Sequence record: ON190025.1
Direction: 5' to 3' (one strand)
DNA length: 64,000 nt
The notes under the pieces are model-generated. The model saw only the letters and a program-made list of their open reading frames with translations, was not told where the DNA came from and ran no database searches. Shown here in pieces: positions 13,125 through 50,560 of the stretch. Every line of letters starts with the position of its first letter. Within the stretch, counting starts at the first letter, position 1. The position numbers were made by a program, and so were the translations under genes.

Positions 13125-13213
13125 TGGCGGAAGCACTGGGAGTCGAACCCAGAGAACGCTATTAACGTCCGACACCTTAGCAGGGTGCTGTCATACCTTT
13201 AGACCATGCTTCC
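13125..13213 (-). tRNA. tRNA-Ser(GCT)
   Basis: Cloverleaf, long variable arm, CCA. Confidence 0.95.
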
Positions 13214-13252
13214 AACGTCTCATCAATTAATGGCATGCTGCTCTCATGCTCA

Positions 13253-13285
13253 GACACATATTTGCTCTTATTGCTGACGTGTGCC
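13253..13285 (-). ncRNA. Minimal hairpin copy of the motif
   Basis: GGCACA-CG-TCAGCAA-TAAGAGCAAATA-TGTGTC. Confidence 0.55.
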
Positions 13286-13368
13286 ACGCGCTTCGCAGAT
13301 CCACTTTAGATAATTTAAAGACCTAGCGGGACTCTTAGCAGGTCTATCCACTCTCTTTCGATTCGCGT
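13286..13368 (-). ncRNA. Structured spacer element
   Basis: ACGCG/CGCGT closing stem, AGACCT/AGGTCT hairpin, repeated AGTGGAT. Confidence 0.4.
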
Positions 13369-13381
13369 TGCTAAGTGAATT

Positions 13382-13458
13382 TGGTGCCCAACCCGAGATT
13401 CGAACTCGGAACTTCTAGTGTTTGAAACTAGTGCCTCTGCCAATTGGACTAGTTGGGC
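13382..13458 (-). tRNA. tRNA-Leu(CAA), short variable loop
   Basis: CTAGT-TTCAAAC-ACTAG anticodon arm, CCA. Confidence 0.92.
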
Positions 13459-13469
13459 TTGATTAAACT

Positions 13470-13570
13470 GCCGCGACTCTTTAATCCCTAACACCTGTCA
13501 GCTTTCGCTCGGCTGAGACCGTTTTTCAACGGCGGTAGTCTAGCTTCGTATAGAACGCGGCTTATGCTAG
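13470..13570 (-). ncRNA. ~100 nt pseudoknotted RNA of unknown class
   Basis: CTAGC/GCTAG stem crossed by GCCGCG/CGCGGC; two GAAA-loop hairpins. Confidence 0.6.
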
Positions 13571-13574
13571 AATT

Positions 13575-13651
13575 TGGTACGCACGGGCGGATTCGAACCG
13601 CCATCCCTGAGATTTTAAGCCTCATGCCTCTGCCAATTGGACCACGTGCGC
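13575..13651 (-). tRNA. tRNA-Leu(TAA), short variable loop
   Basis: TGAGG-CTTAAAA-TCTCA, CCA. Confidence 0.92.
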
Positions 13652-13653
13652 AT

Positions 13654-13727
13654 TGGAGCTCGAACAGGGAATCGAACCCTGACCTGCGGATTTGCAATCC
13701 GTTATACTGCCATTATACGATTCGAGC
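13654..13727 (-). tRNA. tRNA-Cys(GCA)
   Basis: Cloverleaf, U73, CCA. Confidence 0.95.
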
Positions 13728-13739
13728 ATAAATGTACTT

Positions 13740-13816
13740 TGGGGTGACAGACGGGGATCGAACCCGCATCTTCCGGAATCACAACCCGGGGGTATTTCCA
13801 CTTCACCCACTGCCAC
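13740..13816 (-). tRNA. tRNA-His(GTG), C73 but no encoded G-1
   Basis: CCGGG-TTGTGAT-TCCGG; base at -1 is T. Confidence 0.92.
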
Positions 13817-13942
13817 ACCAAAGTACACTTAAAAGTTTGCATTATGTCTTGGAGAAATAGATAAATCTACTAGCAACACCGCCGTCGCTACCTGCAATAC
13901 TTTGGGATGTTTACGACATCAAACGAATGCGCTTCCTGTGCA

Positions 13943-14182
13943 TTAATCAGTTTTCTTTAAGTAGATTCTATCAGGCGATAGTTCTCTTGTAAACATGTTT
14001 TTGAAATAAATTTCGATATCTGCTTCAGTCGTTGAAGACTCAATTTCAAGAGCACGCTCAAGAATCTTGTTACGCTTAAACCCAGCGCGCCAACAGTCAA
14101 ACATAAGTCTGTCCATTTTATTTAGCTTTTCGATTTGATTTGAGTTTACGTATTCATGAGTTTCAAGTAATACAGGCGTCAT
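13943..14182 (-). CDS. Hypothetical protein
   Basis: 79 aa ORF between tRNAs. Confidence 0.6.
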   Translation of the reverse strand: MTPVLLETHEYVNSNQIEKLNKMDRLMFDCWRAGFKRNKILERALEIESSTTEADIEIYFKNMFTRELSPDRIYLKKTD

Positions 14183-14205
14183 AATTTATTTCTCATCATA
14201 AAGAA

Positions 14206-14279
14206 TGGTAGTCCCTAGTGGAATCGAGCCACTTCTTTCTCTGTGTAAAAGAGACGTACTTCCATTATACTAAGGGACC
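14206..14279 (-). tRNA. tRNA-Val(TAC)
   Basis: Cloverleaf, T-loop CTCGATT, CCA. Confidence 0.92.
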
Positions 14280-14285
14280 AAAATT

Positions 14286-14359
14286 TGGAGCGGGTACACG
14301 GACTCGAACCGAGACGAACGACTTGGAAGGACGTCATGCTACCATTACATCATACCCGC
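14286..14359 (-). tRNA. tRNA-Gly(TCC)
   Basis: Cloverleaf, U73, CCA. Confidence 0.93.
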
Positions 14360-14370
14360 ATTGTTAATCT

Positions 14371-14526
14371 GAAGCGTCGAACAAATCACGTATTGCACGT
14401 AGATTCGTAAGCTCTACAGTAAGTGTTCTTATAAAGAACGGGTTGGTCTCATTCGCGAGACATTTTTCAACATATCGAATTTTATCGCGTATGTTGCCCT
14501 TGCTTAGTGTAAAGTAGTCATGCTTC
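14371..14526 (-). ncRNA. Candidate multi-hairpin RNA in tRNA spacer
   Basis: GAAGC/GCTTC closing stem with four hairpins (CAACATA/TATGTTG, GTCTC/GAGAC, GTTCT/AGAAC, GTAGA/TCTAC). Confidence 0.4.
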
Positions 14527-14548
14527 GTAACCTCTTTGTTTTTGAATT

Positions 14549-14624
14549 TGGAGGTGACACCGATACTCGAAATCGGATCTTACGCCGTATGAAAGCGTTG
14601 CTCTGCCACTTGAGCTACATCACC
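14549..14624 (-). tRNA. tRNA with CAT anticodon (Met-like), atypical U73
   Basis: ACGCT-TTCATAC-GGCGT, CCA. Confidence 0.85.
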
Positions 14625-14857
14625 AATTGCAGTAATTAACTCATTTAATCGCACACTGGCTGACACCATATATTCATGGTCTGAGTGAGGAACCACATAG
14701 TGGGTACTGTTACCTCTGCTTAGTTTTGATTGTTTTACATGACGATGACTAGAAACGTTCATAATAATGCCACGCGATACATCCTATATCGCTGCTAACA
14801 TCTAAGTTAGCGTATCCTGCCTTTCGGCTACAGTGTCGTTTCCGACGAATTAAGTAC

Positions 14858-15085
14858 AGACAATACCGAAGTGTTTTTTCGTCTTTTGCATAAATCGGAG
14901 TTGACTAGCTTATTGATTCTCAACAAGCAAATATCGTCTGTTTCAGCGACGCGCCTATCTGACTATTTCTAGACAGAGAGAATCTTTCCTTTCAAGCTGC
15001 GCCTAAGCAAGCTCAGGTTAAAATCAGCCCAGGTTAAGATCATCACTTCTTTTAAGTAATTTCAATTGTTTGCTGTATATTGTCT
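14858..15085 (-). ncRNA. ~228 nt structured RNA closed by the motif helix, paralogous to 12869-13113
   Basis: AGACAAT-AT-ACAGCAA...ATTGTCT; shares AAGACGAWAAAACACTTC (17/18) and AGTGATGA with the 12869 RNA. Confidence 0.75.
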
Positions 15086-15148
15086 CCCTCACCATGCTCG
15101 TGATATGCCGAAGCAAAGTATCATTCGTCGCATGATAAGAGCTTAATA

Positions 15149-15224
15149 TGGCACGCCGTATGAGATTCGAACTCATAACCCCATCCTTAGAAGGGACGTG
15201 CTCTTCCAATTGAGCTAACAGCGC
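15149..15224 (-). tRNA. tRNA-Arg(TCT)
   Basis: CGTCC-CTTCTAA-GGATG, CCA. Confidence 0.93.
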
Positions 15225-15298
15225 ATTGAAAAGATTCGAACCATGAACTAGTGTAGACGATGGTAGTAAAGAGAGTCTACGCTCATGTGTTCGAAATT

Positions 15299-15373
15299 TG
15301 GTGGACACGCAGGGAGTCGAACCCTATCTTCCTCATTGCAAGTGAGGCGCTTTCCCAATTAAGCTAACGGCCC
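15299..15373 (-). tRNA. tRNA-Ala(TGC), irregular acceptor stem
   Basis: G3.U70 present; inner acceptor pairs mismatched or bulged. Confidence 0.85.
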
Positions 15374-15380
15374 ATATTTT

Positions 15381-15590
15381 TTACAACTGTGTGATTGAAA
15401 TATATTCCCAACCGTATAAACCTTCAAGTTCTTCAATCGGCTCACTAACAATGTCAGAAATATATTCAGCAACTTTTGCTTCAACTTCTTCATTAGATAA
15501 TTCTTCACTAACGGAAAAAACATCTTCGTTATTGTTGCCACCGAAATCCCCACCAATGTCATATTCACACCATACAGAAATATAGTTCAT
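15381..15590 (-). CDS. Small acidic hypothetical protein
   Basis: MNYISVWCEYDIGG..., 69 aa. Confidence 0.65.
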   Translation of the reverse strand: MNYISVWCEYDIGGDFGGNNNEDVFSVSEELSNEEVEAKVAEYISDIVSEPIEELEGLYGWEYISITQL

Positions 15591-15614
15591 GTTATTCTCG
15601 CAGTTGTTTGAAAA

Positions 15615-15690
15615 TGGTGCCCTGACACGGATTCGAACCGCGAACCTGCTCATTACAAGTGAGCTGCACTGCCAGTTGTGCTATCAGGGC
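15615..15690 (-). tRNA. tRNA-Thr(TGT)
   Basis: Cloverleaf, CCA. Confidence 0.95.
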
Positions 15691-15696
15691 GTTACT

Positions 15697-15808
15697 GAGT
15701 GTTATTACTAGCGTCGTCCAGACCAGTGATACCAACACTGAAAGGGAATCGAACCCTAAACATTTCTTTCCGATAAGAATATTAGTAAATTGTTTGCTGA
15801 AAACACTC
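15697..15808 (-). ncRNA. YrlA-like circularly permuted tRNA mimic (candidate phage Y RNA)
   Basis: GAGTGT-TT-TCAGCAA...AGGG-TTCGATT-CCCT (T arm), CAGTG-TTGGTAT-CACTG (closed acceptor), GTC-TGGAC-GAC (D arm)...ACACTC. Confidence 0.75.
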
Positions 15809-15817
15809 TTCGGTATT

Positions 15818-15891
15818 TGGCTGGGGATAACAGATTCGAACTGATACCAACGCATTCAAAGTACGTTATGCTGCCTTTACACCAATCCCCA
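15818..15891 (-). tRNA. tRNA-Gln(TTG)
   Basis: U1-A72, G73, CCA. Confidence 0.95.
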
Positions 15892-15910
15892 ATTGTTCTT
15901 AAATTATCTT

Positions 15911-15986
15911 TGGCGGAACCGACGGGTTTCGAACCCGCTACCTTCTCCGTGACAGGGAGACATGCAACCACTTACACCTCGGCTCC
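15911..15986 (-). tRNA. tRNA-Asp(GTC)
   Basis: Cloverleaf, CCA. Confidence 0.95.
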
Positions 15987-16054
15987 CCAAAGACAACTTA
16001 AAGTAGTTGCTTTGTTTTTCAAGTTCACACTTAACGGTAGTGACTCTCCGAATT

Positions 16055-16130
16055 TGGCGCTTCATGTTGGACTCGAACCAACGACTCTCTGATTAACAGT
16101 CAGACACTCTACCAACTGAGTTAATGAAGC
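16055..16130 (-). tRNA. tRNA-Asn(GTT) copy 1
   Basis: Cloverleaf, CCA. Confidence 0.95.
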
Positions 16131-16131
16131 A

Positions 16132-16206
16132 TGGCGGGCGTGGAGAATTTCGAAATCTCGACTTGTCGGTTAACAGCCGACTACTCTGCCTCTGAGTTAC
16201 ACACCC
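16132..16206 (-). tRNA. tRNA-Asn(GTT) copy 2
   Basis: Cloverleaf, divergent body, CCA. Confidence 0.92.
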
Positions 16207-16218
16207 TTGAATTTAAAC

Positions 16219-16276
16219 AGTAATCCTTTTTGCTTTTTCCAAATAAAAGTTTTGTATTGTTTGCTGTAAGATTACT
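16219..16276 (-). ncRNA. 58 nt RNA consisting mainly of the motif
   Basis: AGTAATC-TT-ACAGCAA...GCAAAAAG-GATTACT. Confidence 0.7.
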
Positions 16277-16281
16277 TAAAC

Positions 16282-16355
16282 TGGCAGGGGCATAGAGATT
16301 CGAACTCTAACGAACGGGTTTGGAATCCGTCATGCTGCCTTTACATCATGCCCCT
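16282..16355 (-). tRNA. tRNA-Trp(CCA)
   Basis: Cloverleaf, CCA. Confidence 0.95.
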
Positions 16356-16361
16356 AAAATC

Positions 16362-16435
16362 TGGTAGTCCCTAAGAGAATCGAACTCTTACCAAGCGATT
16401 ATCGGTCGCACGCTCTACCGTTGAGCTAAGGGACT
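16362..16435 (-). tRNA. tRNA-Ile(GAT), C at position 33
   Basis: GCGA-CCGATAA-TCGC, CCA. Confidence 0.88.
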
Positions 16436-16499
16436 AAAGTGAGCACATTTCAGTGCTCGTGTTAATCGGTTAAGTGACTAAACTTCCCGGTTAACTAAT

Positions 16500-16598
16500 T
16501 GGCGGAAGACTAGGGATTCGAACCCTAACATCACCTCCCGGTGACCGACGGTTTTCAAGACCGTTGCCGCTACCCAGAATCTCTCGGCTAAGCCTTCC
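16500..16598 (-). tRNA. tRNA-Ser(TGA), enlarged D loop
   Basis: ACGGT-CTTGAAA-ACCGT, long variable arm, CCA. Confidence 0.92.
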
Positions 16599-16604
16599 AA
16601 TTAA

Positions 16605-16847
16605 TTATTTGTGTCTACCCCACATCAGCTTATCAAACTGACTAAGATATTCTTCAACTGCATCAGCATTCGCTTGACTGACAACCCAAACATTATCTTG
16701 TGATTTTGATTTGGTGTCTCTAACAGCGCCAAGTTTTTGCATCATGTTTCGATGTCTCTCTCTATCCATTGCACCACTAAAAAGTGAGCCAGAAACTCCG
16801 AAAGTAACATCTTTCGACTCGGTAATGAATTCATCAAATGTTTTCAT
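16605..16847 (-). CDS. Putative internal head protein (IP-like)
   Basis: MKTFDEFITE/S matches the T4 IP capsid-targeting sequence pattern; AAGGA SD; CTAAATA upstream. Confidence 0.75.
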   Translation of the reverse strand: MKTFDEFITESKDVTFGVSGSLFSGAMDRERHRNMMQKLGAVRDTKSKSQDNVWVVSQANADAVEEYLSQFDKLMWGRHK

Positions 16848-16893
16848 TGTAATTTTCCTTATTGCGTAAAACAATATTTAGTCGAAATAAATT

Positions 16894-16970
16894 TGGTTGC
16901 GTGGGGCTGGATTCGAACCAGCGTTCTCCGGCTTATGAGACCGACGAGATGACCACTTCTCTACCCCGCA
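16894..16970 (-). tRNA. Initiator-like tRNA-fMet(CAT) with a bulged acceptor stem
   Basis: Body resembles the bacterial initiator (TGCGGGG...CTCGTCGG.CTCATAA...CGCAACCA); one extra A in the 3' acceptor strand. Confidence 0.85.
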
Positions 16971-16980
16971 ATTATTCAAC

Positions 16981-17067
16981 AGCTTGCGTTCTTTGGTCTG
17001 TTTATCGCTGTCTGAACTGAGTTCGCCGAGCGATCAATAGATTAAGTTAAATTGCAGTATGCAAGCT
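16981..17067 (-). ncRNA. 87 nt motif-closed RNA
   Basis: AGCTTGC-AT-ACTGCAA...ATCGCT/AGCGAT hairpin...AAAGAAC-GCAAGCT. Confidence 0.7.
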
Positions 17068-17072
17068 AAAAC

Positions 17073-17158
17073 TGGTGGAGCGTAGAGGAATCGAACCTCT
17101 CTACCCGTTAAGGGTCAGGGATTTACAGTCCCCTGTCTCACCTTGAGACGTACGCTCC
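17073..17158 (-). tRNA. tRNA-Tyr(GTA)
   Basis: Long variable arm, CCA. Confidence 0.95.
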
Positions 17159-17164
17159 GTAATT

Positions 17165-17239
17165 TGGTTCTCCCGACGAGATTCGAACTCGCGCACTTCA
17201 CCTTGAAAGGGTGATGACCTACCGTTAGTCCACGGGAGA
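17165..17239 (-). tRNA. tRNA-Glu(TTC)
   Basis: TCACC-CTTTCAA-GGTGA, CCA. Confidence 0.93.
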
Positions 17240-17302
17240 ATTAAATTGTATATTGATTTGCAAGCTATCTAACTTACAAAGCGATACACAATGTATCTAA
17301 TT

Positions 17303-17379
17303 TGGTACGCCGCCCTGGACTCGAACCAGACACCTGAGAGTTAAAAGCTCCCTGCTCTTCCATGATGAGCTACCGACGC
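17303..17379 (-). tRNA. tRNA-Lys(TTT) copy 1
   Basis: Cloverleaf, CCA. Confidence 0.95.
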
Positions 17380-17390
17380 ATTATAAAATA

Positions 17391-17465
17391 TGGTGGGTCG
17401 CAAGAGATTCGAACTCTCACCGGTCTGGTTAAAAGCCAGATGTACTACCGTTATACGAACGACCC
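17391..17465 (-). tRNA. tRNA-Lys(TTT) copy 2
   Basis: Cloverleaf, divergent body, CCA. Confidence 0.93.
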
Positions 17466-17554
17466 AGATTTGATTTTCACGTTAAGAGCGTTTGCTAAAT
17501 AACTCAAAACTAAAACCCCTTGCTTGATTTAACTCTTACAAACAAGCTATAATA

Positions 17555-17629
17555 TGGTGCACCCCCTCGGAATCGAACCGAGCACTGCGGGACTTCAATC
17601 CGCCGCTTTTCCTGATAAGCTAAGGGTGC
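17555..17629 (-). tRNA. tRNA-Phe(GAA)
   Basis: GCGGA-TTGAAGT-CCCGC, CCA. Confidence 0.9.
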
Positions 17630-17630
17630 A

Positions 17631-17708
17631 TGGTACGCAAGAAGAGATTCGAACTCTTAACTTCTGGTTTCTAAGACCAGTGCCTCTGCCAGATTGGGCT
17701 ACTTGCGC
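17631..17708 (-). tRNA. tRNA-Leu(TAG), short variable loop
   Basis: CTGGT-CTTAGAA-ACCAG, CCA. Confidence 0.92.
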
Positions 17709-17726
17709 ATTAAATTTTGTAAACTT

Positions 17727-17857
17727 CTTTTCTTCATTGTACATGATGTTTATATCGTTGTAAACATCTTTTTTTGAAAAACTTTTCATTCGTTTTTGAA
17801 TGATGTTTCGCTTTTCTTCATTGTACATGATGTTTATATCGTTGTAAACATCTTTTT
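17727..17857 (-). promoter_or_regulatory. Exact 47 bp direct repeat (17727-17773, 17811-17857), each a sigma70-type promoter
   Basis: TTTACA-17 nt-TACAAT in each copy, with inverted repeat GATGTTTA...TAAACATC over the -35. Confidence 0.8.
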
Positions 17858-18063
17858 GAATTTATTTTGAAGAACTTAACGTTTTCATTTTCTATGTGTT
17901 AATATTAACACTCGCTCAAGACATCATAAACACTAATTTATGAAAAAGTTCGTTAAATTCTATCATCTCGACAGTACTTAACGAGATACGGTCCTAAGCG
18001 TATCAATTCGTAGAAGCAGTTTCGGGAATGTGCGAAAGCGAGCTTCAATCAAACAACACTAAC

Positions 18064-18139
18064 TGGCACCCAATACAAGATTCGAACTTGTAACCTTCGC
18101 CTTCGTAGGGCGCTGCTCTTCCAATTGAGCTAATCGGGC
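18064..18139 (-). tRNA. tRNA-Arg(ACG)
   Basis: Cloverleaf, CCA. Confidence 0.95.
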
Positions 18140-18147
18140 ATTAAAAC

Positions 18148-18224
18148 TGGTCCGTGACAAGCGATTCGAACGCTTAACTTCTCCGCCCCAAACGGAGTAC
18201 TCTACCAGATTGAGCTAGTCACGG
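18148..18224 (-). tRNA. tRNA-Pro(TGG) copy 1
   Basis: Cloverleaf, CCA. Confidence 0.93.
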
Positions 18225-18233
18225 ATTTTAAAT

Positions 18234-18307
18234 TGGTCGGGACGAAGAGACTCGAACTCTTACCACATGCTCCCAAAGCATGAACGCTACCTTTACGCCA
18301 CGTCCCG
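18234..18307 (-). tRNA. tRNA-Pro(TGG) copy 2
   Basis: Cloverleaf, divergent body, CCA. Confidence 0.93.
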
Positions 18308-18327
18308 TTTGTTCTTTAACTTTGTTT

Positions 18328-18357
18328 ATCATACTCTGTAATCAAAGTACGTTAAAC
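18328..18357 (-). promoter_or_regulatory. Probable sigma70-type promoter for the downstream tRNAs
   Basis: TTTAAC-17 nt-TATGAT just downstream of a terminator. Confidence 0.5.
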
Positions 18358-18384
18358 AAAATTTCTTAACTTTCTTACGCCCAT

Positions 18385-18408
18385 AAAAAAGGACGCTATT
18401 TGCGTCCT
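18385..18408 (-). terminator. Rho-independent terminator
   Basis: GGACGC/GCGTCC stem plus T6. Confidence 0.8.
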
Positions 18409-18437
18409 CAAGTATACTTCTATGTTATACTATCGGA

Positions 18438-18551
18438 CTACAAGAGGGTATCCCACTTCTGGTTCGCAATCGGATTCGCTAGATACACGAATTCTGAGCG
18501 CAGAAAATCGCTGCGTAATGTCTCAGATGAATGTGTAAACGAATGCGTCAT
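18438..18551 (-). CDS. Possible 37 aa peptide
   Basis: MTHSFTHSSETLRSDFLRSEFVYLANPIANQKWDTLL, GAGAG upstream, terminator downstream. Confidence 0.35.
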   Translation of the reverse strand: MTHSFTHSSETLRSDFLRSEFVYLANPIANQKWDTLL

Positions 18552-18678
18552 TGAATGCTCTCTTGAAATAAAAATTAAAATTTGTTTTGTTTCTTTATAG
18601 TACTTATAACACTAAATCTGACGATTTGCGGTATTTTCGCAGAAAATTGAAAAAAATTATCAATTTTCTGCGATTTTA

Positions 18679-18915
18679 TTAACCTAAGTGTTTTCGCTTG
18701 TTCATTTCAGCAAGAATTTCGTCGTTGTAGTGCTTATTAAGCTCAACGAATTTCTTGTGCTGATCTGAAGTCAATTCGTTTGTATCGTTCAGATGCTTCA
18801 AAAACCCAAGAGGCTTACGAAACGACTTGCGATATTCATTCAGACGCTCATCTGTTAGATTGCGCAATTGTTTCGGAGTCAGTAACGTTTTGTTGATATT
18901 AAATGTTCCGCTCAT
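18679..18915 (-). CDS. Hypothetical protein
   Basis: MSGTFNINK..., 78 aa, GAGG SD. Confidence 0.65.
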   Translation of the reverse strand: MSGTFNINKTLLTPKQLRNLTDERLNEYRKSFRKPLGFLKHLNDTNELTSDQHKKFVELNKHYNDEILAEMNKRKHLG

Positions 18916-18941
18916 GTTATACCTCACTAGTTTATCAAAAA

Positions 18942-19057
18942 TGGTAGTCGGGGCTGGATTCGAACCAGCGACCACGTGCTTAACAGGCAATTGAAGGAGT
19001 GCTGGAGCGATACTTGTCAGTATCATTCTTCGTGCTCTACCACTGAGCTACCCGACT
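18942..19057 (-). ncRNA. tRNA-shaped RNA, anticodon loop replaced by a motif-bearing insert (CCA present)
   Basis: AGTCGGG/CCCGACT-A-CCA, normal D and T arms; insert GATACT-GACA-AGTATC-GCT-CCAGCAC. Confidence 0.75.
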
Positions 19058-19093
19058 ATGAATTATTTAACTTTGAATTTCAAATTTCGATAT

Positions 19094-19354
19094 TCAAAGT
19101 TTCGTTTGTCTTTTTTTACTGTAATACGTATCCCAATCAATAGAAACAGGACAGTTCTTACTACCCACACGAGATAAGAAAACGTCGTGAGTGTCTTTGT
19201 AAGCTTCTCTGAGAGACTTTACTTGTTTCTCATGATGAGTTATGTACTCAGCACACGCTTTGTTGTACTCAGCTTTAGAGAAGCGTTCATCGCCCGTGAA
19301 ATTACCGTTTAGATACGGTCGAATAACACGAACACGTTCTTTAGACCATCCCAT
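19094..19354 (-). CDS. Hypothetical protein
   Basis: 86 aa ORF. Confidence 0.65.
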   Translation of the reverse strand: MGWSKERVRVIRPYLNGNFTGDERFSKAEYNKACAEYITHHEKQVKSLREAYKDTHDVFLSRVGSKNCPVSIDWDTYYSKKRQTKL

Positions 19355-19378
19355 ACTAAAACTATTTTCAATTTATTT

Positions 19379-19456
19379 TGGTGACCCCAACAGGACTCGA
19401 ACCTGTAACCTACCGATTATGAGTCGGTTGCTCTAACCAAGTTGAGCTATAGGGCC
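19379..19456 (-). tRNA. tRNA(CAT), most like Ile2 (lysidine type)
   Basis: GGCCC acceptor and GACTCATAATC arm resemble bacterial tRNA-Ile2. Confidence 0.85.
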
Positions 19457-22643: not shown

Positions 22644-22731
22644 AATGAGTTACCTATTAATAGTGTGTTTCGTCTCACGATTATACGACAGATCTGGTGA
22701 TTTCTAAACAATGCGACAAGGTGCCTATTCT

Positions 22732-22830
22732 CTAATATTACTAATACCTCTAACTTCACTAAAACTACTAATACTACTAAGATGATGCCCAATTTTTGGG
22801 CCTCACACCAAATTCTGCCGCTTCGCTCTA
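22732..22830 (-). repeat. Origin-like element A: hairpin plus six TTAG at 9 bp period
   Basis: CTAA on plus strand at 22732, 22741, 22750, 22759, 22768, 22777; hairpin GAGGCCC-AAAAATT-GGGCATC. Confidence 0.8.
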
Positions 22831-22841
22831 GATTCAGATAC

Positions 22842-22863
22842 AAAAAAGCCCCGTAAGGGGCTT
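22842..22863 (-). terminator. Terminator after gene 3
   Basis: GCCCC/GGGGC stem plus T6. Confidence 0.8.
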
Positions 22864-45618: not shown

Positions 45619-47156
45619 TGTCAGGAACAAACATATTCACGCACGCTAGTGATGCAGCGCAATATGTTTACCTACAGCCCTTCACATCGCCTGGTTCAGC
45701 GTTTGAGTCAGGCGGTGATGTGCAGAGTATAATGGAGCTATTTGACGATAGCGCATTAGCACCACTTCCGTCACTTCCGTATGCGACAACGACTGAGGCT
45801 GGTATTGTTGAGTACGCAACTCAAACAGAAGCTAATGCACTTGACGACTTATTAACTGTAATCACACCAGCGTCACTAGACGGGGTTGATCAGTTCGTGT
45901 CACCAGCAACCAGTACTCAGTTAGGTAATCTACAAGAATTGCGTAATACTGATTTGACAAGAACATATTCGTCATCAGATGCAAGTCGTTTGCTGTCATA
46001 TCGCCGTCTAAATGAAATGATGACGACTCGTAATGCACTAGCAGATGACACAACAAACGAATCACAAGGTTTTGCTGAGTTTGCAAATCTAAGCGAAACT
46101 TTAGCATATAACCCTGATCGATTCATTTCTCCACTTAGAACGTGGAACTTAATTAAAGCAGAGATACCAAACCCTTGGGCTCAAGCGACAGAAACATACA
46201 CGGGCGTGCTTCGTACTGTAGCAGAACGAGACGGGTATAAATCAGACGGTTCGATTGCAATTACAGTTAAAGGTCTTAATTACGTTAAAGCGACGACATC
46301 TAAGCGTGGTGCATTCAAATTAACACAGAACAACTATGACCGTAATGCAAGCGATTCAGATGAATATGCTATAACTCCCGGTACAATTGACAATCTAATA
46401 GCGACACCGACTAAGCACGGGTTCTTTGAACTACCAAGCTCGTATGTAAACGACTCAACGAAAGCCACAAGTGCTGCACTTGGTGTTGATTTGAATACAC
46501 TATTGGGCCCAGACGGTGGTACAATTACTGGTGTTTTGAAGTGCGACAACATTTACACAAACATCATTTCTCGTCAAAAGCAGAGCAGCTATGGTGGAAC
46601 ATATTACACAACTGTGCGAGAGCAGAGAGAAATGTTCCCAAACAACCAATTAGACGCGAAGATCGGTCTCGAAGGGCGCCCTGTGGGTAGTATTTTTCAC
46701 TGTACTTCATCAGTTGACCCGAATGAGATTTTCGGTGGCGTATGGTATAAGATGAGAGCAGGTCGAACTATGATGGGGCAGGGTATCGGTGATGATGGGT
46801 TCACTCGCAGATATTACGCAGCGGGTTCGTTCAGTGACATCGACCGTGTTCAGTTATACGAGAGTAATTTACCACAACACCAACACGCAGGTTGGGGTGA
46901 AGCATATACAGGCTCACGCGAGGGGTGTATTCGCTACGAAACTCATCGAAGCCCGTATGGTGTAACATATACGTGTGATGAATATAATACTGTCAGTTAC
47001 TGGAGATTCGGTATAACAGGTTCGCGTAATAATCCCGGTTCGAAATCTACTGATCGTGATAATTACATGTATTACAACGAAGCAGTTGGTGGTAATGAGC
47101 CGCATGAGAATATGATGCCATACTACCCAGTTTACATTTGGAGACGAGTTAAATGA
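45618..47156 (+). CDS. 12: Short tail fibre gp12, paralogue 1
   Basis: ATTTEAGIVEYAT repeats, collar domain, HQH, PHENMMPYYPVYIWRRVK. Confidence 0.85.
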   Translation: MSGTNIFTHASDAAQYVYLQPFTSPGSAFESGGDVQSIMELFDDSALAPLPSLPYATTTEAGIVEYATQTEANALDDLLTVITPASLDGVDQFVSPATSTQLGNLQELRNTDLTRTYSSSDASRLLSYRRLNEMMTTRNALADDTTNESQGFAEFANLSETLAYNPDRFISPLRTWNLIKAEIPNPWAQATETYTGVLRTVAERDGYKSDGSIAITVKGLNYVKATTSKRGAFKLTQNNYDRNASDSDEYAITPGTIDNLIATPTKHGFFELPSSYVNDSTKATSAALGVDLNTLLGPDGGTITGVLKCDNIYTNIISRQKQSSYGGTYYTTVREQREMFPNNQLDAKIGLEGRPVGSIFHCTSSVDPNEIFGGVWYKMRAGRTMMGQGIGDDGFTRRYYAAGSFSDIDRVQLYESNLPQHQHAGWGEAYTGSREGCIRYETHRSPYGVTYTCDEYNTVSYWRFGITGSRNNPGSKSTDRDNYMYYNEAVGGNEPHENMMPYYPVYIWRRVK

Positions 47157-48580
47157 GCAAAGGAACTCAAATTTTCAATCACGTGATTGACGATGCGGGT
47201 ACGGTTACAGTTGAAGTCGAAGGTACTTCCTTTGATGGTCTTACTGGGGGTAATAACGATCTCCAAACGTGTCTTGAGCTTGTACAAGCTCATGCACTTC
47301 AACCATTACCCGATTACCCTATAGCATCAACATCTGTCGCAGGTATTACACTATTAAGTGATAATTCAGCAGTTGTCGATGAGCTTAATGACACTAGCGC
47401 AGTGACACCATCAGCCTTAAATTATTGGATGGAAAATCACGCGACTGCAACAGAACTTCAATATGGCTTCGTGAAGCTAATCACAAACAGCACGATTGAT
47501 AATATTGACCCGACAGCCGCAGTAGAAGAAGCTCAGAAGCACGCATTCACGCTTAAAACATTGAACTATGCGTTGAATACTCGTTTCTATGCAACCGAAT
47601 CTGCACCGGGTGCAGTGCGTCTAGCGACATATGCACAAGCAACGACGACTGGTACATTATCTGATAGTGTAGCGATGACTCCTCAGAGAGTTAAAGAAAT
47701 GCTTGACGTGTGGGCGAATACTACAGCATCAGATGCCACAGAAACGACGAAAGGGTTGATTCGATTAGCAAACGGAACTGAAGTAAACAGCACATCAGTA
47801 TCAGAAAACAATTTAGCGATTTCACCGTATCGATTCAATGAACGTACAGCAACAACTACTAGAAAGGCAGGGTTCTATCTACCGAACTCAACAGTTGCAA
47901 ATGCGCGTACATCTAACGATCATGCAGTTACAGTCGGTACATTAGATTTATTCACTGCGACTAGCTCACGTGTCGGTGTTGCGAAACTTGCAAACAATCT
48001 AACAACAAACGACGCGACTCAAGCACTAAGTGCGGCAATGGGTTATAAGTTGAATAATGAAAAGATTGGGGTTTCAGGCGGGACAGTAACTGGTACATTG
48101 AAAATCGACGATGTTCAATCTGTAAGTGGTACTCAGTTAATGACGAATGGTCTGATTGAATCATCAGCCATGTTGAATATGTACCCTGTTGGTGCTATTT
48201 ACATGTCACTTGAATCTACATCACCAGCTACGCTATTCGGCGGGACATGGTCTAGAATTGCAGAAGGTCGTGTGCTTGTATCTGAAGGTACACATGGTGG
48301 TAGAACATTCAACGTCGGTCAAACAGGCGGCGAATACGAAGTTATCTTAACTGAAGAAACAATGCCAACTCACAAACACGCAGGTTGGGGTGAACGTTGG
48401 ACTTACGGTGGGAACGGTTTGGGATTTGGAATTGCGTATCAATACGGTCGTAACAACCCAGGTTCAGGTCGCACTGATAATGACAACTACTTGTATTACT
48501 CATCACCAGAAGGTGGTGGTCAACCACATAATAACGTACAGCCATACTATACTGTTTACATGTGGGAAAGAACTGCATAA
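47153..48580 (+). CDS. 12: Short tail fibre gp12, paralogue 2
   Basis: ATETTKGLIRLA repeats, YPVGAIY collar, HKH, PHNNVQPYYTVYMWERTA. Confidence 0.85.
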   Translation: MSKGTQIFNHVIDDAGTVTVEVEGTSFDGLTGGNNDLQTCLELVQAHALQPLPDYPIASTSVAGITLLSDNSAVVDELNDTSAVTPSALNYWMENHATATELQYGFVKLITNSTIDNIDPTAAVEEAQKHAFTLKTLNYALNTRFYATESAPGAVRLATYAQATTTGTLSDSVAMTPQRVKEMLDVWANTTASDATETTKGLIRLANGTEVNSTSVSENNLAISPYRFNERTATTTRKAGFYLPNSTVANARTSNDHAVTVGTLDLFTATSSRVGVAKLANNLTTNDATQALSAAMGYKLNNEKIGVSGGTVTGTLKIDDVQSVSGTQLMTNGLIESSAMLNMYPVGAIYMSLESTSPATLFGGTWSRIAEGRVLVSEGTHGGRTFNVGQTGGEYEVILTEETMPTHKHAGWGERWTYGGNGLGFGIAYQYGRNNPGSGRTDNDNYLYYSSPEGGGQPHNNVQPYYTVYMWERTA

Positions 48581-48620
48581 AGACAAGCATATTATAGCTT
48601 GAAAGTCAATGCTAATAAAC

Positions 48621-48648
48621 GGGTGAGATTGATTTCTCACCCTTTTTT
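48621..48648 (+). terminator. Terminator after gene 12
   Basis: GGGTGAGA/TCTCACCC plus T6. Confidence 0.85.
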
Positions 48649-48652
48649 ATAT

Positions 48653-48753
48653 TAGCGCAGCGAAGAAAATGGCAAGAGGCGGAAAAATTCCGTCTCATCT
48701 TAGTAGTATTAGTGGTTTTAGTGAAGTTAGGGATATTAGTATGATTAGTATTA
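48653..48753 (+). repeat. Origin-like element B, inverted homologue of element A
   Basis: TTAG at 48700, 48709, 48718, 48727, 48736, 48745; hairpin GAGGCGG-AAAAATT-CCGTCTC. Confidence 0.8.
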
Positions 48754-48830
48754 AATACGTGTTTAAAACCATGAATATGCTTGCTATTATTAACACATAA
48801 AGACATTCCCTCCCTGTTTCTTTGTATTGC

Positions 48831-48838
48831 TATAAATA
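48831..48838 (+). promoter_or_regulatory. T4 late promoter (wac)
   Basis: TATAAATA. Confidence 0.8.
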
Positions 48839-48877
48839 GTAGTAAGCTATGTTCATTTACAATACAAGGGAACAAAA

Positions 48878-50560
48878 ATGACAATTCAAAAGCCTATCAT
48901 TGAAGAGCTTAGATATGTAAATGGTCAACCAGATCCTTCTCAACGTCCCGATCAGACTCGAATCAATTGGGCTAAGAACGGTGAAAGCATCAACGGTGCT
49001 ACTGGTGACACGACTTCAGACGGTGTATTAAACCGCGCAGGAGTACAGATTCAAGAAAACGTTCTAAACTCTCATTACAACACAAAAGCACAGCAAAACG
49101 CAATTGAAGAACTTGTTGATACTGTTAACGAACTGACAGGTGGCGGTGACGCTAACTTGGGTGCTCGTGTGGCTCAAAACGAGTTTGATATTGATGTACT
49201 TGAAGGTCAAATGACTAACGTCATTGATGACATCGGTGTACCGAGTAGCGTTGACGTACTTGCAACAGGTCTGCATAAAGGCATCGAAGATGTTGAATCA
49301 GATATTGGTGTTCGTAACAGCCTAGATATTCCAAACGAAGTTGAAAACAACGATACAGTTCGTAAAGATCTATATTTCATCAAGCGTCGTATTGGTAATG
49401 ACCGTAACTACGATGTCAACGGCAACCCATCGCCTAGTACAAACCCAACTGGTATGAAATATCAGATTGAAGATCTGTACAACAAAACAGCTACGATCAA
49501 CGCTGAAATTGGCGAGAACGCAATCCCGCTTTCAATCAACGGTCGTTTATACGAACTAGAGCAAAACTCACAAGTTGGTTCTGTTGATCAGATTCGTGAT
49601 GAACTAGGTGAAACGGCAGATGCCGACCCTGCTCGTCCCGTGTATCTTCGTCTTGATGATGCTGAAAGTTCTATTTCAGACAATGCATCAGATATTGCAT
49701 TATTACAACAGGAAGTTGAGACACCGACTACAGGTCTACTTGATCGCGTTAGCGCGAATGAAGTTACAATTGCAGATAATCAGTCACAGATTGGCTCCGT
49801 TACTAATTTATTTATTGAAATGTCAACTGATATCGGTTCATACGCAGTAGATGACGTGTACTCGGGTAGCATGAAAGCTCGTCTATCGACGTTTAACGAC
49901 GATATCAATAGCTTGTGGGGTCGTTTAGGGGCTACTGACGCAGAAACTGGCACAGTGTCTTACAGAGTGTCACAGCTTGAGTCTAGTCTAGGTGAGCGTA
50001 CAAACCCTGTTGAATTCACTGCATGGTACACGATTCAAGAAAACCGTGGCTTAGTTGAATCTGCTCAGGCAGACGTTGACGGTCTATTGGCTGTAGTTGG
50101 TCAGAGTGATAGCGAAGTGGGTACATTGCGTGCTCGTGTTCTGGAACTTGAAGCACAGTTGGATCATGCATTATTGTCTTCGGATACTCCGAGTACAGTT
50201 GATTTGACAACTACACCTACAGATGTATTCAGTTTATTCAATCTTGAGACAGACGTGAGTGGTTACACGTATGCAGGTGGTGTATTGACACGTAACGGTC
50301 TATCATTGAGCAAAACGATGTCTATTCATTGGGTTGTTGTTTCACCAGTAAACACTACAATCACGATTCGAATTGATTTCGATCATGATAACGGCACAAG
50401 CTCATCAATCGAGAAAACACGTACGCTTCGTGCAAACCAAGTTACTCCAGTTACAATCACTAACGTTGCGAATCTAGATGACTTGAGTGAGATTCGAGTA
50501 TTGGCTAGTACAGCGGCTAACGTTACTATCGACCATGAATCATTTGTACTAAAAGTATAA
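48878..50560 (+). CDS. wac: Fibritin (whisker/collar)
   Basis: LRYVNGQP...QTRINWAKNGE...GVLNR N-terminus, segmented coiled coil. Confidence 0.92.
   Translation: MTIQKPIIEELRYVNGQPDPSQRPDQTRINWAKNGESINGATGDTTSDGVLNRAGVQIQENVLNSHYNTKAQQNAIEELVDTVNELTGGGDANLGARVAQNEFDIDVLEGQMTNVIDDIGVPSSVDVLATGLHKGIEDVESDIGVRNSLDIPNEVENNDTVRKDLYFIKRRIGNDRNYDVNGNPSPSTNPTGMKYQIEDLYNKTATINAEIGENAIPLSINGRLYELEQNSQVGSVDQIRDELGETADADPARPVYLRLDDAESSISDNASDIALLQQEVETPTTGLLDRVSANEVTIADNQSQIGSVTNLFIEMSTDIGSYAVDDVYSGSMKARLSTFNDDINSLWGRLGATDAETGTVSYRVSQLESSLGERTNPVEFTAWYTIQENRGLVESAQADVDGLLAVVGQSDSEVGTLRARVLELEAQLDHALLSSDTPSTVDLTTTPTDVFSLFNLETDVSGYTYAGGVLTRNGLSLSKTMSIHWVVVSPVNTTITIRIDFDHDNGTSSSIEKTRTLRANQVTPVTITNVANLDDLSEIRVLASTAANVTIDHESFVLKV

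Follow-up and report, generated by a model that had tools for sequence, protein, structure and literature searches.

A hairpin followed by a nine-base TTAG array at six intergenic sites of KVP40-like Vibrio phages, a possible replication-origin module

Plasmid iterons are, in general terms, repeats of ~17-22 bp that lie in helical phase and adjoin the gene encoding their own Rep protein. At the RNA level, the targets of HutP and TRAP consist of regularly spaced UAG-containing boxes with free spacers and a spacing of 5-7 nt, and the operator of T4 gene 32 places a structured element ahead of an unstructured A/U-rich tract with short repeats. T4-like phages also carry the terminator-promoter cassettes called PeSLs, reportedly described by Arbiol in 2010. 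The definition of a PeSL comprises no more than a stem-loop and a promoter; these cassettes are present in large numbers, concentrated in hyperplastic regions near indels, and no TTAG array is described for them (Comeau 2014, PMC4122927). Stable small hairpins, including those of the GCGAAGC type, are found in ssi signals and mini-hairpin origins such as G4 oric and RSF1010 ssiA, beside DNA that is read as a single strand (PMC13037366); these act on single-stranded replicons with a known primase. For T4 itself, the review PMC3016281 gives five origins in 169 kb, with oriF located at uvsY; the origins have no common local motif, the role of the oriE repeats is left undefined, and in oriF and oriG the promoter is followed by an unwinding element for which no particular sequence is required. 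The oriE repeats are 12-nt GTTGAAGGTAAT units placed every 24 bp inside the coding sequence of gene 5.

The element dealt with here has something of several of these systems, and we place it, as a variant, among the iteron and hairpin modules already known as cis-elements of phages. The combination of hairpin and TTAG array appears to be undescribed: it was found neither in the full-text literature nor in the genome papers of phi-pp2, phiGrn1/phiSt2 and nt-1/PeSL (the KVP40 genome paper was not covered), nor in the keyword-matched passages of two T4 reviews. The window, i.e., the whole stretch of DNA analysed, comprises 64,000 nt identical to bases 62001-126000 of ON190025.1, the record of Vibrio phage PVA23, a KVP40-like relative of T4 in the genus Schizotequatrovirus. 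In it, the second copy of gene 12 (ORF 47153-48580) is separated from wac (ATG at 48878) by 297 bases (48581-48877). The sequence-only reading had described this gap as ~300 bp long and otherwise unexplained; the length holds, whereas only ~100 bases, those of element B, are out of the ordinary, since the rest is occupied by a terminator, a sigma-70-type promoter, a late promoter and a leader hairpin. The layout, on the plus strand throughout, is as follows.

48621..48648, plus strand: intrinsic terminator past gene 12, bordering the cassette on its left (scan and sequence); stem 48621-48642 of 8 bp, loop of 6 nt, T6 run 48643-48648
48658..48665, plus strand: shortened remnant of the left motif AGCGAAGCG, with GCGAAG at 48660-48665
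48676..48696, plus strand: hairpin GAGGCGG/AAAAATT/CCGTCTC (folding, pair counts, RNAalifold)
48696-48699, plus strand: CATC, between hairpin and array
48700..48753, plus strand: TTAG array of six 9-base units, with TTAG starting at 48700, 48709, 48718, 48727, 48736 and 48745
48762..48790, plus strand: promoter of the sigma-70/T4-early type (TTTAAA, 17 nt, TATTAT with TG), directed away from the array
48815..48874, plus strand: wac leader hairpin, 15 bp, with arms 48815-48829 and 48860-48874

All the parts that had been read in element B were recovered, to the base, by direct reading of the sequence. Its hairpin folds into a 9-bp stem that includes one G.U (G.T in DNA) pair and closes on an AAA loop, with energies of -13.1 kcal/mol as RNA and -7.0 as DNA (z-scores of -5.6 and -4.7, respectively). 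It does not have the T-run of an intrinsic terminator, as it is followed by ATCTTAGTAG, and the scan flags the upstream terminator only. The array contains no C at all on the plus strand. The full left motif includes the mini-hairpin sequence GCGAAGC; it is found in element A and at the B locus of KVP40, nt-1, 6E35.1a and 1.081.O, so that the B copy of PVA23 has lost it in part.

The signals on the wac side are of a more familiar nature. The leader hairpin sequesters the wac Shine-Dalgarno sequence in long transcripts started upstream (-19.3 kcal/mol), and the late promoter TATAAATA (48831-48838) lies within the hairpin loop, so that late wac transcripts are free of the hairpin (-2.5 kcal/mol). 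T4 genes e, soc, 49 and I-TevI have the identical hairpin/late-promoter design, according to PMC3014915, and what is seen at wac is ordinary T4-type signalling, outside the element. The same arrangement is kept in KVP40 and K566. With the Shine-Dalgarno sequence buried, wac cannot be translated from a transcript of the B-side promoter, and despite this the promoter is conserved: its hexamers are kept, with a free spacer, in KVP40, nt-1, K566, F86, 6E35.1a and VS2. The B locus of the phage 1.081.O has no sigma-70 promoter, and the one beside B is a neighbour of the element and no constant part of it.

Element A, in the same window, runs on the minus strand and its parts are these.

22820..22863, minus strand: left part, with the gene 3 terminator (stem 22846-22863), a T-run and GCGAAGC at 22820-22826
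22784..22804, minus strand: hairpin with the GGCCC/GGGC stem variant (fold and pair counts)
22727..22780, minus strand: array of six TTAG units, starting at 22780, 71, 62, 53, 44 and 35
22680..22708, minus strand: sigma-70-type promoter for gene 1, encoding a dNMP kinase (TTTAGA, 17 nt, TATAAT)

The promoter of gene 1 stands 24 bp past the array and is directed away from it. The homology proposed between the two elements is borne out, given that ~95 bases align (alignment columns ~59-149) and that the succession of parts is identical in both (terminator, GCGAAG, hairpin, CATC, array). B had also been called the inverted homologue of A; the opposite orientation is real, but it only mirrors the direction of the genes, as A and B both follow those that flank them. 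A simple tandem repeat or a chance occurrence was ruled out by shuffling, together with the conservation in 51 records: three TTAG boxes in succession at 9-base steps match eight times in the window, always within A (22732-22780, minus strand) or B, against an expectation of 0.01 in shuffled sequences, none of which (0/100) reached eight.

A and B are part of a larger family, since six copies are found in the whole PVA23 genome, at the following positions of the record.

35.8 kb: upstream of a lipoprotein gene
84.8 kb: element A, between gene 3 and gene 1
110.7 kb: element B, between gene 12 and wac
137.5 kb: between gene 35 and uvsY
180.2 kb: between an SprT-like gene and a glutaredoxin gene
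226.5 kb: between PVA23_342 and PVA23_343

A profile built from these six copies finds no further match elsewhere in the PVA23 genome. In the divergent phage 1.081.O the six loci recur, with seven copies due to one tandem pair, and in both genomes every copy is co-directional with its flanking genes. By sensitive BLAST, the element is present in 51 phage records, all of them from KVP40-like Vibrio phages and including nt-1 (genus Mylasvirus), in most cases at six places each. None of 185,579 bacterial and archaeal genomes contains the 25-base core of the element, which rules out a host origin. Scans of IMG/VR with four or five TTAG boxes brought up unrelated and mostly coding tandem repeats among the matches listed, an 18-mer scan returned only KVP40 and VH7D plus one chance match, and a metagenome scan with a loose query gave two true matches out of 120, adding one further stem variant. 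No Rfam family reaches its gathering threshold over either element (the best scores are 18.7 bits versus 51 over B and 26 versus 50 over A), and all the sub-threshold matches fall on the terminators.

Which features are constrained becomes clear from an alignment in register, to which nine phages and one metagenomic contig contribute 22 distinct copies. Of the 132 boxes, 124 retain TTAG, while each of the five spacer bases carries between 0.4 and 1.7 bits; the step of the array is always nine bases, and the number of units ranges from five to seven, commonly six. The loop, the 3' arm and the ATC that follows are near-invariant, the upper 6 bp of the stem are conserved in the 22 copies, and the left motif stands ~12 variable bases 5' of the hairpin. 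Box-specific conservation along with an exact step indicates a site that is probably read by a factor. In the B array of K566 (L266:480-540), units 3-5 read TTCG, TTCG and TTCA, i.e., three TTAG boxes have been lost, whereas 6E35.1a, a close relative of K566, has its six B boxes intact; the K566 copy is either decaying or tolerant of changes.

Could the constraint be that of a protein? Several public records annotate a small coding gene across the element, and two open frames per strand do run through the array, with ORFs of 38-67 aa placed by the records on the minus strand in PG216 and on the plus strand in K566, F86 and 6E35.1a. This reading is barely credible, since the ATG-started ORFs lie in three different frames in KVP40, nt-1/VS2 and 1.081.O, their start codon is not conserved, the annotators conflict on the strand, and the would-be Leu codon TTA is present in 124 of the 132 boxes with no synonymous change at all, against 24% TTA usage in the neighbouring genes. 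The frame differences between genomes and the invariant TTA codon led us to exclude it. Public annotations thus leave the element blank or place spurious small ORFs on it. The ‘hypothetical proteins’ annotated across it at L001:2297-2497, L266:421-594, L267:373-576 and L268:431-547 look like such ORFs.

The hairpin gives information of a different kind. B and A differ in two adjacent G-C pairs of the stem, which are swapped (GGCGG/CCGTC in B, GGCCC/GGGCA in A), a compensatory double change, and 90% of the stem cells of the alignment pair. The sequence-only reading had taken this covariation to imply selection on a single-strand or cruciform structure; the difference is real, but the A-type swap is common to PVA23 and KVP40 at the same locus and therefore probably represents a single event. 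The covariation suggests selection on structure, with the weight of one evolutionary event. Furthermore, both stem variants occur within one genome with pairing kept in each, which favours an intrastrand structure over a palindrome that a dimer would recognise in duplex DNA. A G.U (G.T) pair is present in the commonest stem and a U.G in one copy, and the hairpin is stronger on the sense strand, as the G.T pair weakens the hairpin of the complementary strand. In RNAalifold only the upper six pairs are retained and the array is left unstructured.

Copies within a genome resemble one another more than they do their counterparts in a distant phage: in the comparison of PVA23 with 1.081.O, paralogues are 83-85% identical and orthologues 77%, whereas at the short distance between PVA23 and KVP40 orthologues are 87-96% identical. 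These figures point to slow concerted evolution or to co-evolution with a shared partner. They would also be expected of a repeat with no function of its own, such as a recombination junction or a selfish cassette akin to PeSLs and homogenised by gene conversion, and this explanation can draw in addition on the terminator and element of 1.081.O, which are identical as a unit at two loci, on the tandem duplication in the same phage, on the description of PeSLs in nt-1 and KVP40 (PMC4122927) and on a 10-base direct repeat that brackets the B cassette. Nonetheless, we consider it improbable, because the conservation is box-specific and not uniform, the intergenic DNA flanking the element diverges and the element does not, the other copies are without flanking repeats, most copies lie in the conserved core and not in hyperplastic regions, and the six loci are fixed across the genus and nt-1, with none extra or missing in two complete genomes. 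A mobile element was rejected as well, since the other five copies have only unrelated 8-9-base matches in place of a target-site duplication.

The repeat at B, CATAAAGACA, stands at 48576-48585 and 48796-48805, on both sides of the terminator, the element and the promoter, with one copy overlapping the stop codon of gene 12; it is 11-12 bases long in KVP40 and nt-1. The tandem pair of 1.081.O lies in its gap between gene 3 and gene 1 (L144:7107-7400), as two complete copies 163 bases apart, and the gene 1 promoter follows the second copy only.

With PeSL cassettes the element has in common the genomes, the context of a terminator followed by an early promoter, and copies similar enough to recombine (PMC4122927). 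Unlike them, the hairpin-plus-TTAG combination occurs six times only, mostly in the conserved core, and is also seen where a terminator or a promoter is missing. Four loci have both of these signals, though with the ~100-base element between them. In all the genomes examined, B, A and the uvsY copy occupy syntenic sites amid conserved core genes, i.e., not hyperplastic or indel-prone regions.

The surroundings of the copies deserve a closer look in this respect. By scan, B, A and the glutaredoxin copy have a terminator 8-25 bases upstream and an outward promoter of the sigma-70/T4-early type downstream; an interval of 8-25 nt between such a terminator and the start of the element is also seen in other genomes. 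The sequence of the uvsY copy shows a terminator and a GTTTAA-type -35, which the scan does not call on the strand of the element; at the PVA23_342 copy the scan finds only a promoter, and at the lipoprotein copy neither signal. Terminator and outward promoter thus flank four to five of the six copies, so that most copies would, judging from these predicted signals, occupy the least-transcribed DNA of a compact genome. The lipoprotein copy is the exception: it fills the spacer between two co-directional genes (89 bases in PVA23, with the start codon of the record, and 83 in 1.081.O), extends to the start codon or to a point right beside it, and in PVA23 its array carries an AGGAG Shine-Dalgarno sequence. 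Being inside an operon spacer with neither terminator nor promoter, it must be transcribed.

This context is compatible with an array read in duplex DNA by a phage or host regulator, acting as an insulator or roadblock behind the terminators or as a switch of the early promoters. Invariant boxes with free spacers are what tandem-repeat operators look like, a position behind terminators suits a roadblock, and a promoter comes 2-30 bp after five of the six copies of PVA23 and after five of the seven of 1.081.O. On the other hand, the distance from the array to the -35 shows no helical phasing and ranges from ~2 to 30 bp, two loci (the lipoprotein locus, and B in 1.081.O) are promoterless, just six intergenic sites per genome carry the element, and the compensatory stem change, with both variants in one genome, is unexpected for a duplex site. 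On balance, a duplex regulator is rather unlikely.

An operator read on the sense-strand RNA has to be weighed too, in which the hairpin would nucleate an oligomeric or ring-shaped protein contacting UUAG every nine nt along an unstructured tract, and which would govern translation, processing or decay at operon boundaries. In its favour speak the co-orientation with the flanking genes in both genomes, the G.U and U.G pairs and the stronger sense-strand hairpin, the RNAalifold result that retains the hairpin and leaves the array unstructured, the array of the lipoprotein locus that reaches the start codon with its AGGAG in PVA23, and a step that is a multiple of three with 5-7 boxes (commonly six), numbers that a ring or filament could accommodate. 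There is an analogy with HutP/TRAP targets and with the gene 32 operator (UAG boxes, free spacers, a hairpin and then an unstructured tract), but the UAG here recurs every 9 nt and most copies lie behind terminators; in the scan of B and A, no terminator follows the array. Furthermore, four to five of the six copies stand just past strong intrinsic terminators and before the next promoter, where little RNA is expected, with the array 60-130 nt from the next start codon and a promoter in between; there is no terminator/antiterminator alternative after the array and no Rfam match, and an RNA operator predicts neither the even spacing of the sites nor the extreme instability of their duplexes. 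We regard it as unlikely; if true, it would be the sign of a new RNA-binding regulator in phages.

As for these last two properties, at each of the six sites the array has the lowest duplex stability of any 54-bp stretch within ±300 bp, and the six arrays fall between the 99.4th and the 99.97th percentile of the genome for duplex instability in 54-bp windows (B at the 99.83rd). The sites are 26-56 kb apart, with a minimum gap of 25.9 kb (P = 0.007 versus random placement); the same minimum-gap test gives P = 0.004 in 1.081.O, although the even spacing in the two phages counts as a single observation because the loci are syntenic. There is one site per 41 kb, which resembles the origin density of T4 as given in PMC3016281, and one copy abuts the promoter of uvsY.

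Taken together, an untranscribed spacer between terminator and promoter, easy melting, an even spread at a T4-like density and the copy at uvsY favour the reading of B as one of six cis-acting copies of a DNA-level unwinding and loading site and, thereby, as a candidate replication-origin module, which we hold to be quite possible, at somewhat less than an even chance. A bolder statement, that all six are the replication origins of KVP40-like phages, insulated by a terminator, opened by promoter-driven supercoiling and read every nine bases at TTAG by an initiator beside an extruded hairpin, is more doubtful. Protein binding, melting and replication at the element are what we infer in either case. 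The upstream terminator would keep incoming RNA polymerase off the site, and the adjacent early promoter, firing outward, would leave negative supercoils behind, under which the highly unstable TTAG array may melt; the hairpin, and perhaps also the GCGAAGC mini-hairpin, would form on the G-rich strand, and an oligomeric protein might then read TTAG every nine bases and recruit the phage helicase-primase. The gidA promoter beside oriC of E. coli has the same arrangement of an outward promoter and supercoils. We know of no initiator for the element: among the proteins neighbouring three of the loci there is no match to a DNA-binding or Rep family and no informative Pfam match, and the other neighbours are gp12, wac, gp3, the dNMP kinase, gp35, UvsY and the glutaredoxin. 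Neighbouring genes were set aside as a source of the binding factor for want of an informative Pfam match.

How does such a module compare with the origins already described? With oriF (at uvsY) and oriG (at gene 34) of T4 it shares the number of several sites per genome at a similar density, the format of short modules (~100 bp) that are intergenic or at gene edges, the association, at five of the six copies of PVA23, of a host-sigma promoter with an A+T-rich unwinding element, and one copy at the uvsY promoter. In the T4 origins, however, the unwinding element follows the promoter and is not bound to a specific sequence (PMC3016281), while the array described here is unstable but located upstream, is sequence-specific and common to six sites, and has no promoter at two loci. 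Of what the sequence-only reading stated on B, the structural part holds; the spacing, the instability, the context and the uvsY copy fit the origin-like character that it proposed, whereas the oriF/oriG layout and the promoterless copy do not.

T4 oriE and plasmid iteron origins resemble the element in having evenly spaced direct repeats beside an early promoter, in a syntenic position. The units of oriE differ in sequence, spacing and location, for which reason oriE-type iterons were rejected. Compared with plasmid iterons, the 5-7 repeats at an exact 9-bp step have a unit shorter than known iterons and off the helical phase; only four of the nine bases are fixed, the arrays are intergenic and come after a hairpin, and their surroundings contain no Rep gene, as judged from the neighbouring proteins at three loci. 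Mini-hairpin origins and ssi signals have in common with it the small stable hairpins; GCGAAGC, nonetheless, is common in this genome and missing from some copies of the element, that of B in PVA23 included. As a marker of origins the heptamer was given little weight due to this genome-wide frequency: PVA23 contains 47 copies of it on both strands, against ~18 expected from base composition. Two further comparisons, based on general knowledge of these sites, were discarded: DnaA-trio-like sequences (there are TAG triplets after a GC cluster, but TAG is only every third triplet) and lambda nut-like sites (no boxA-like motif, and a wrong placement relative to the promoters).

Several observations weigh against the origin reading and should be kept together with it. 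The array lies upstream of the promoter, opposite to T4 oriF/oriG; the lipoprotein copy is in an operon, B of 1.081.O is promoterless and B of K566 has lost three boxes; the 9-bp step is off the helical repeat, unlike that of classical iterons; and all the copies run along transcription, with a commonest G.T pair that is better tolerated in RNA, so that an RNA role fits co-orientation and this pair about equally well. If the origin reading were true, the element would be the first sequence-defined origin class common to all the origins of a T4-like genome, and a motif at six evenly spread syntenic sites is a concrete candidate for what defines an origin in T4-like phages. The KVP40-like group is large and well sampled, and one of its members, nt-1, grows on Vibrio natriegens, a host that is harmless and multiplies fast.

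Two minor observations concern the annotation of PVA23. The window contains a cluster of 28 tRNA genes (ARAGORN; 13125-19456, minus strand), over which the GenBank record has no RNA genes and a few small hypothetical CDS only. At the copies located at 35.8 and 226.5 kb of the record, the unrelated genes PVA23_88 and PVA23_342 extend into the left motif (L004:35801-35829 and L008:26465-26484); both proteins end in Ser-Glu-Ala, encoded by AGCGAAGCG, and the stop codons fall just before the hairpin.
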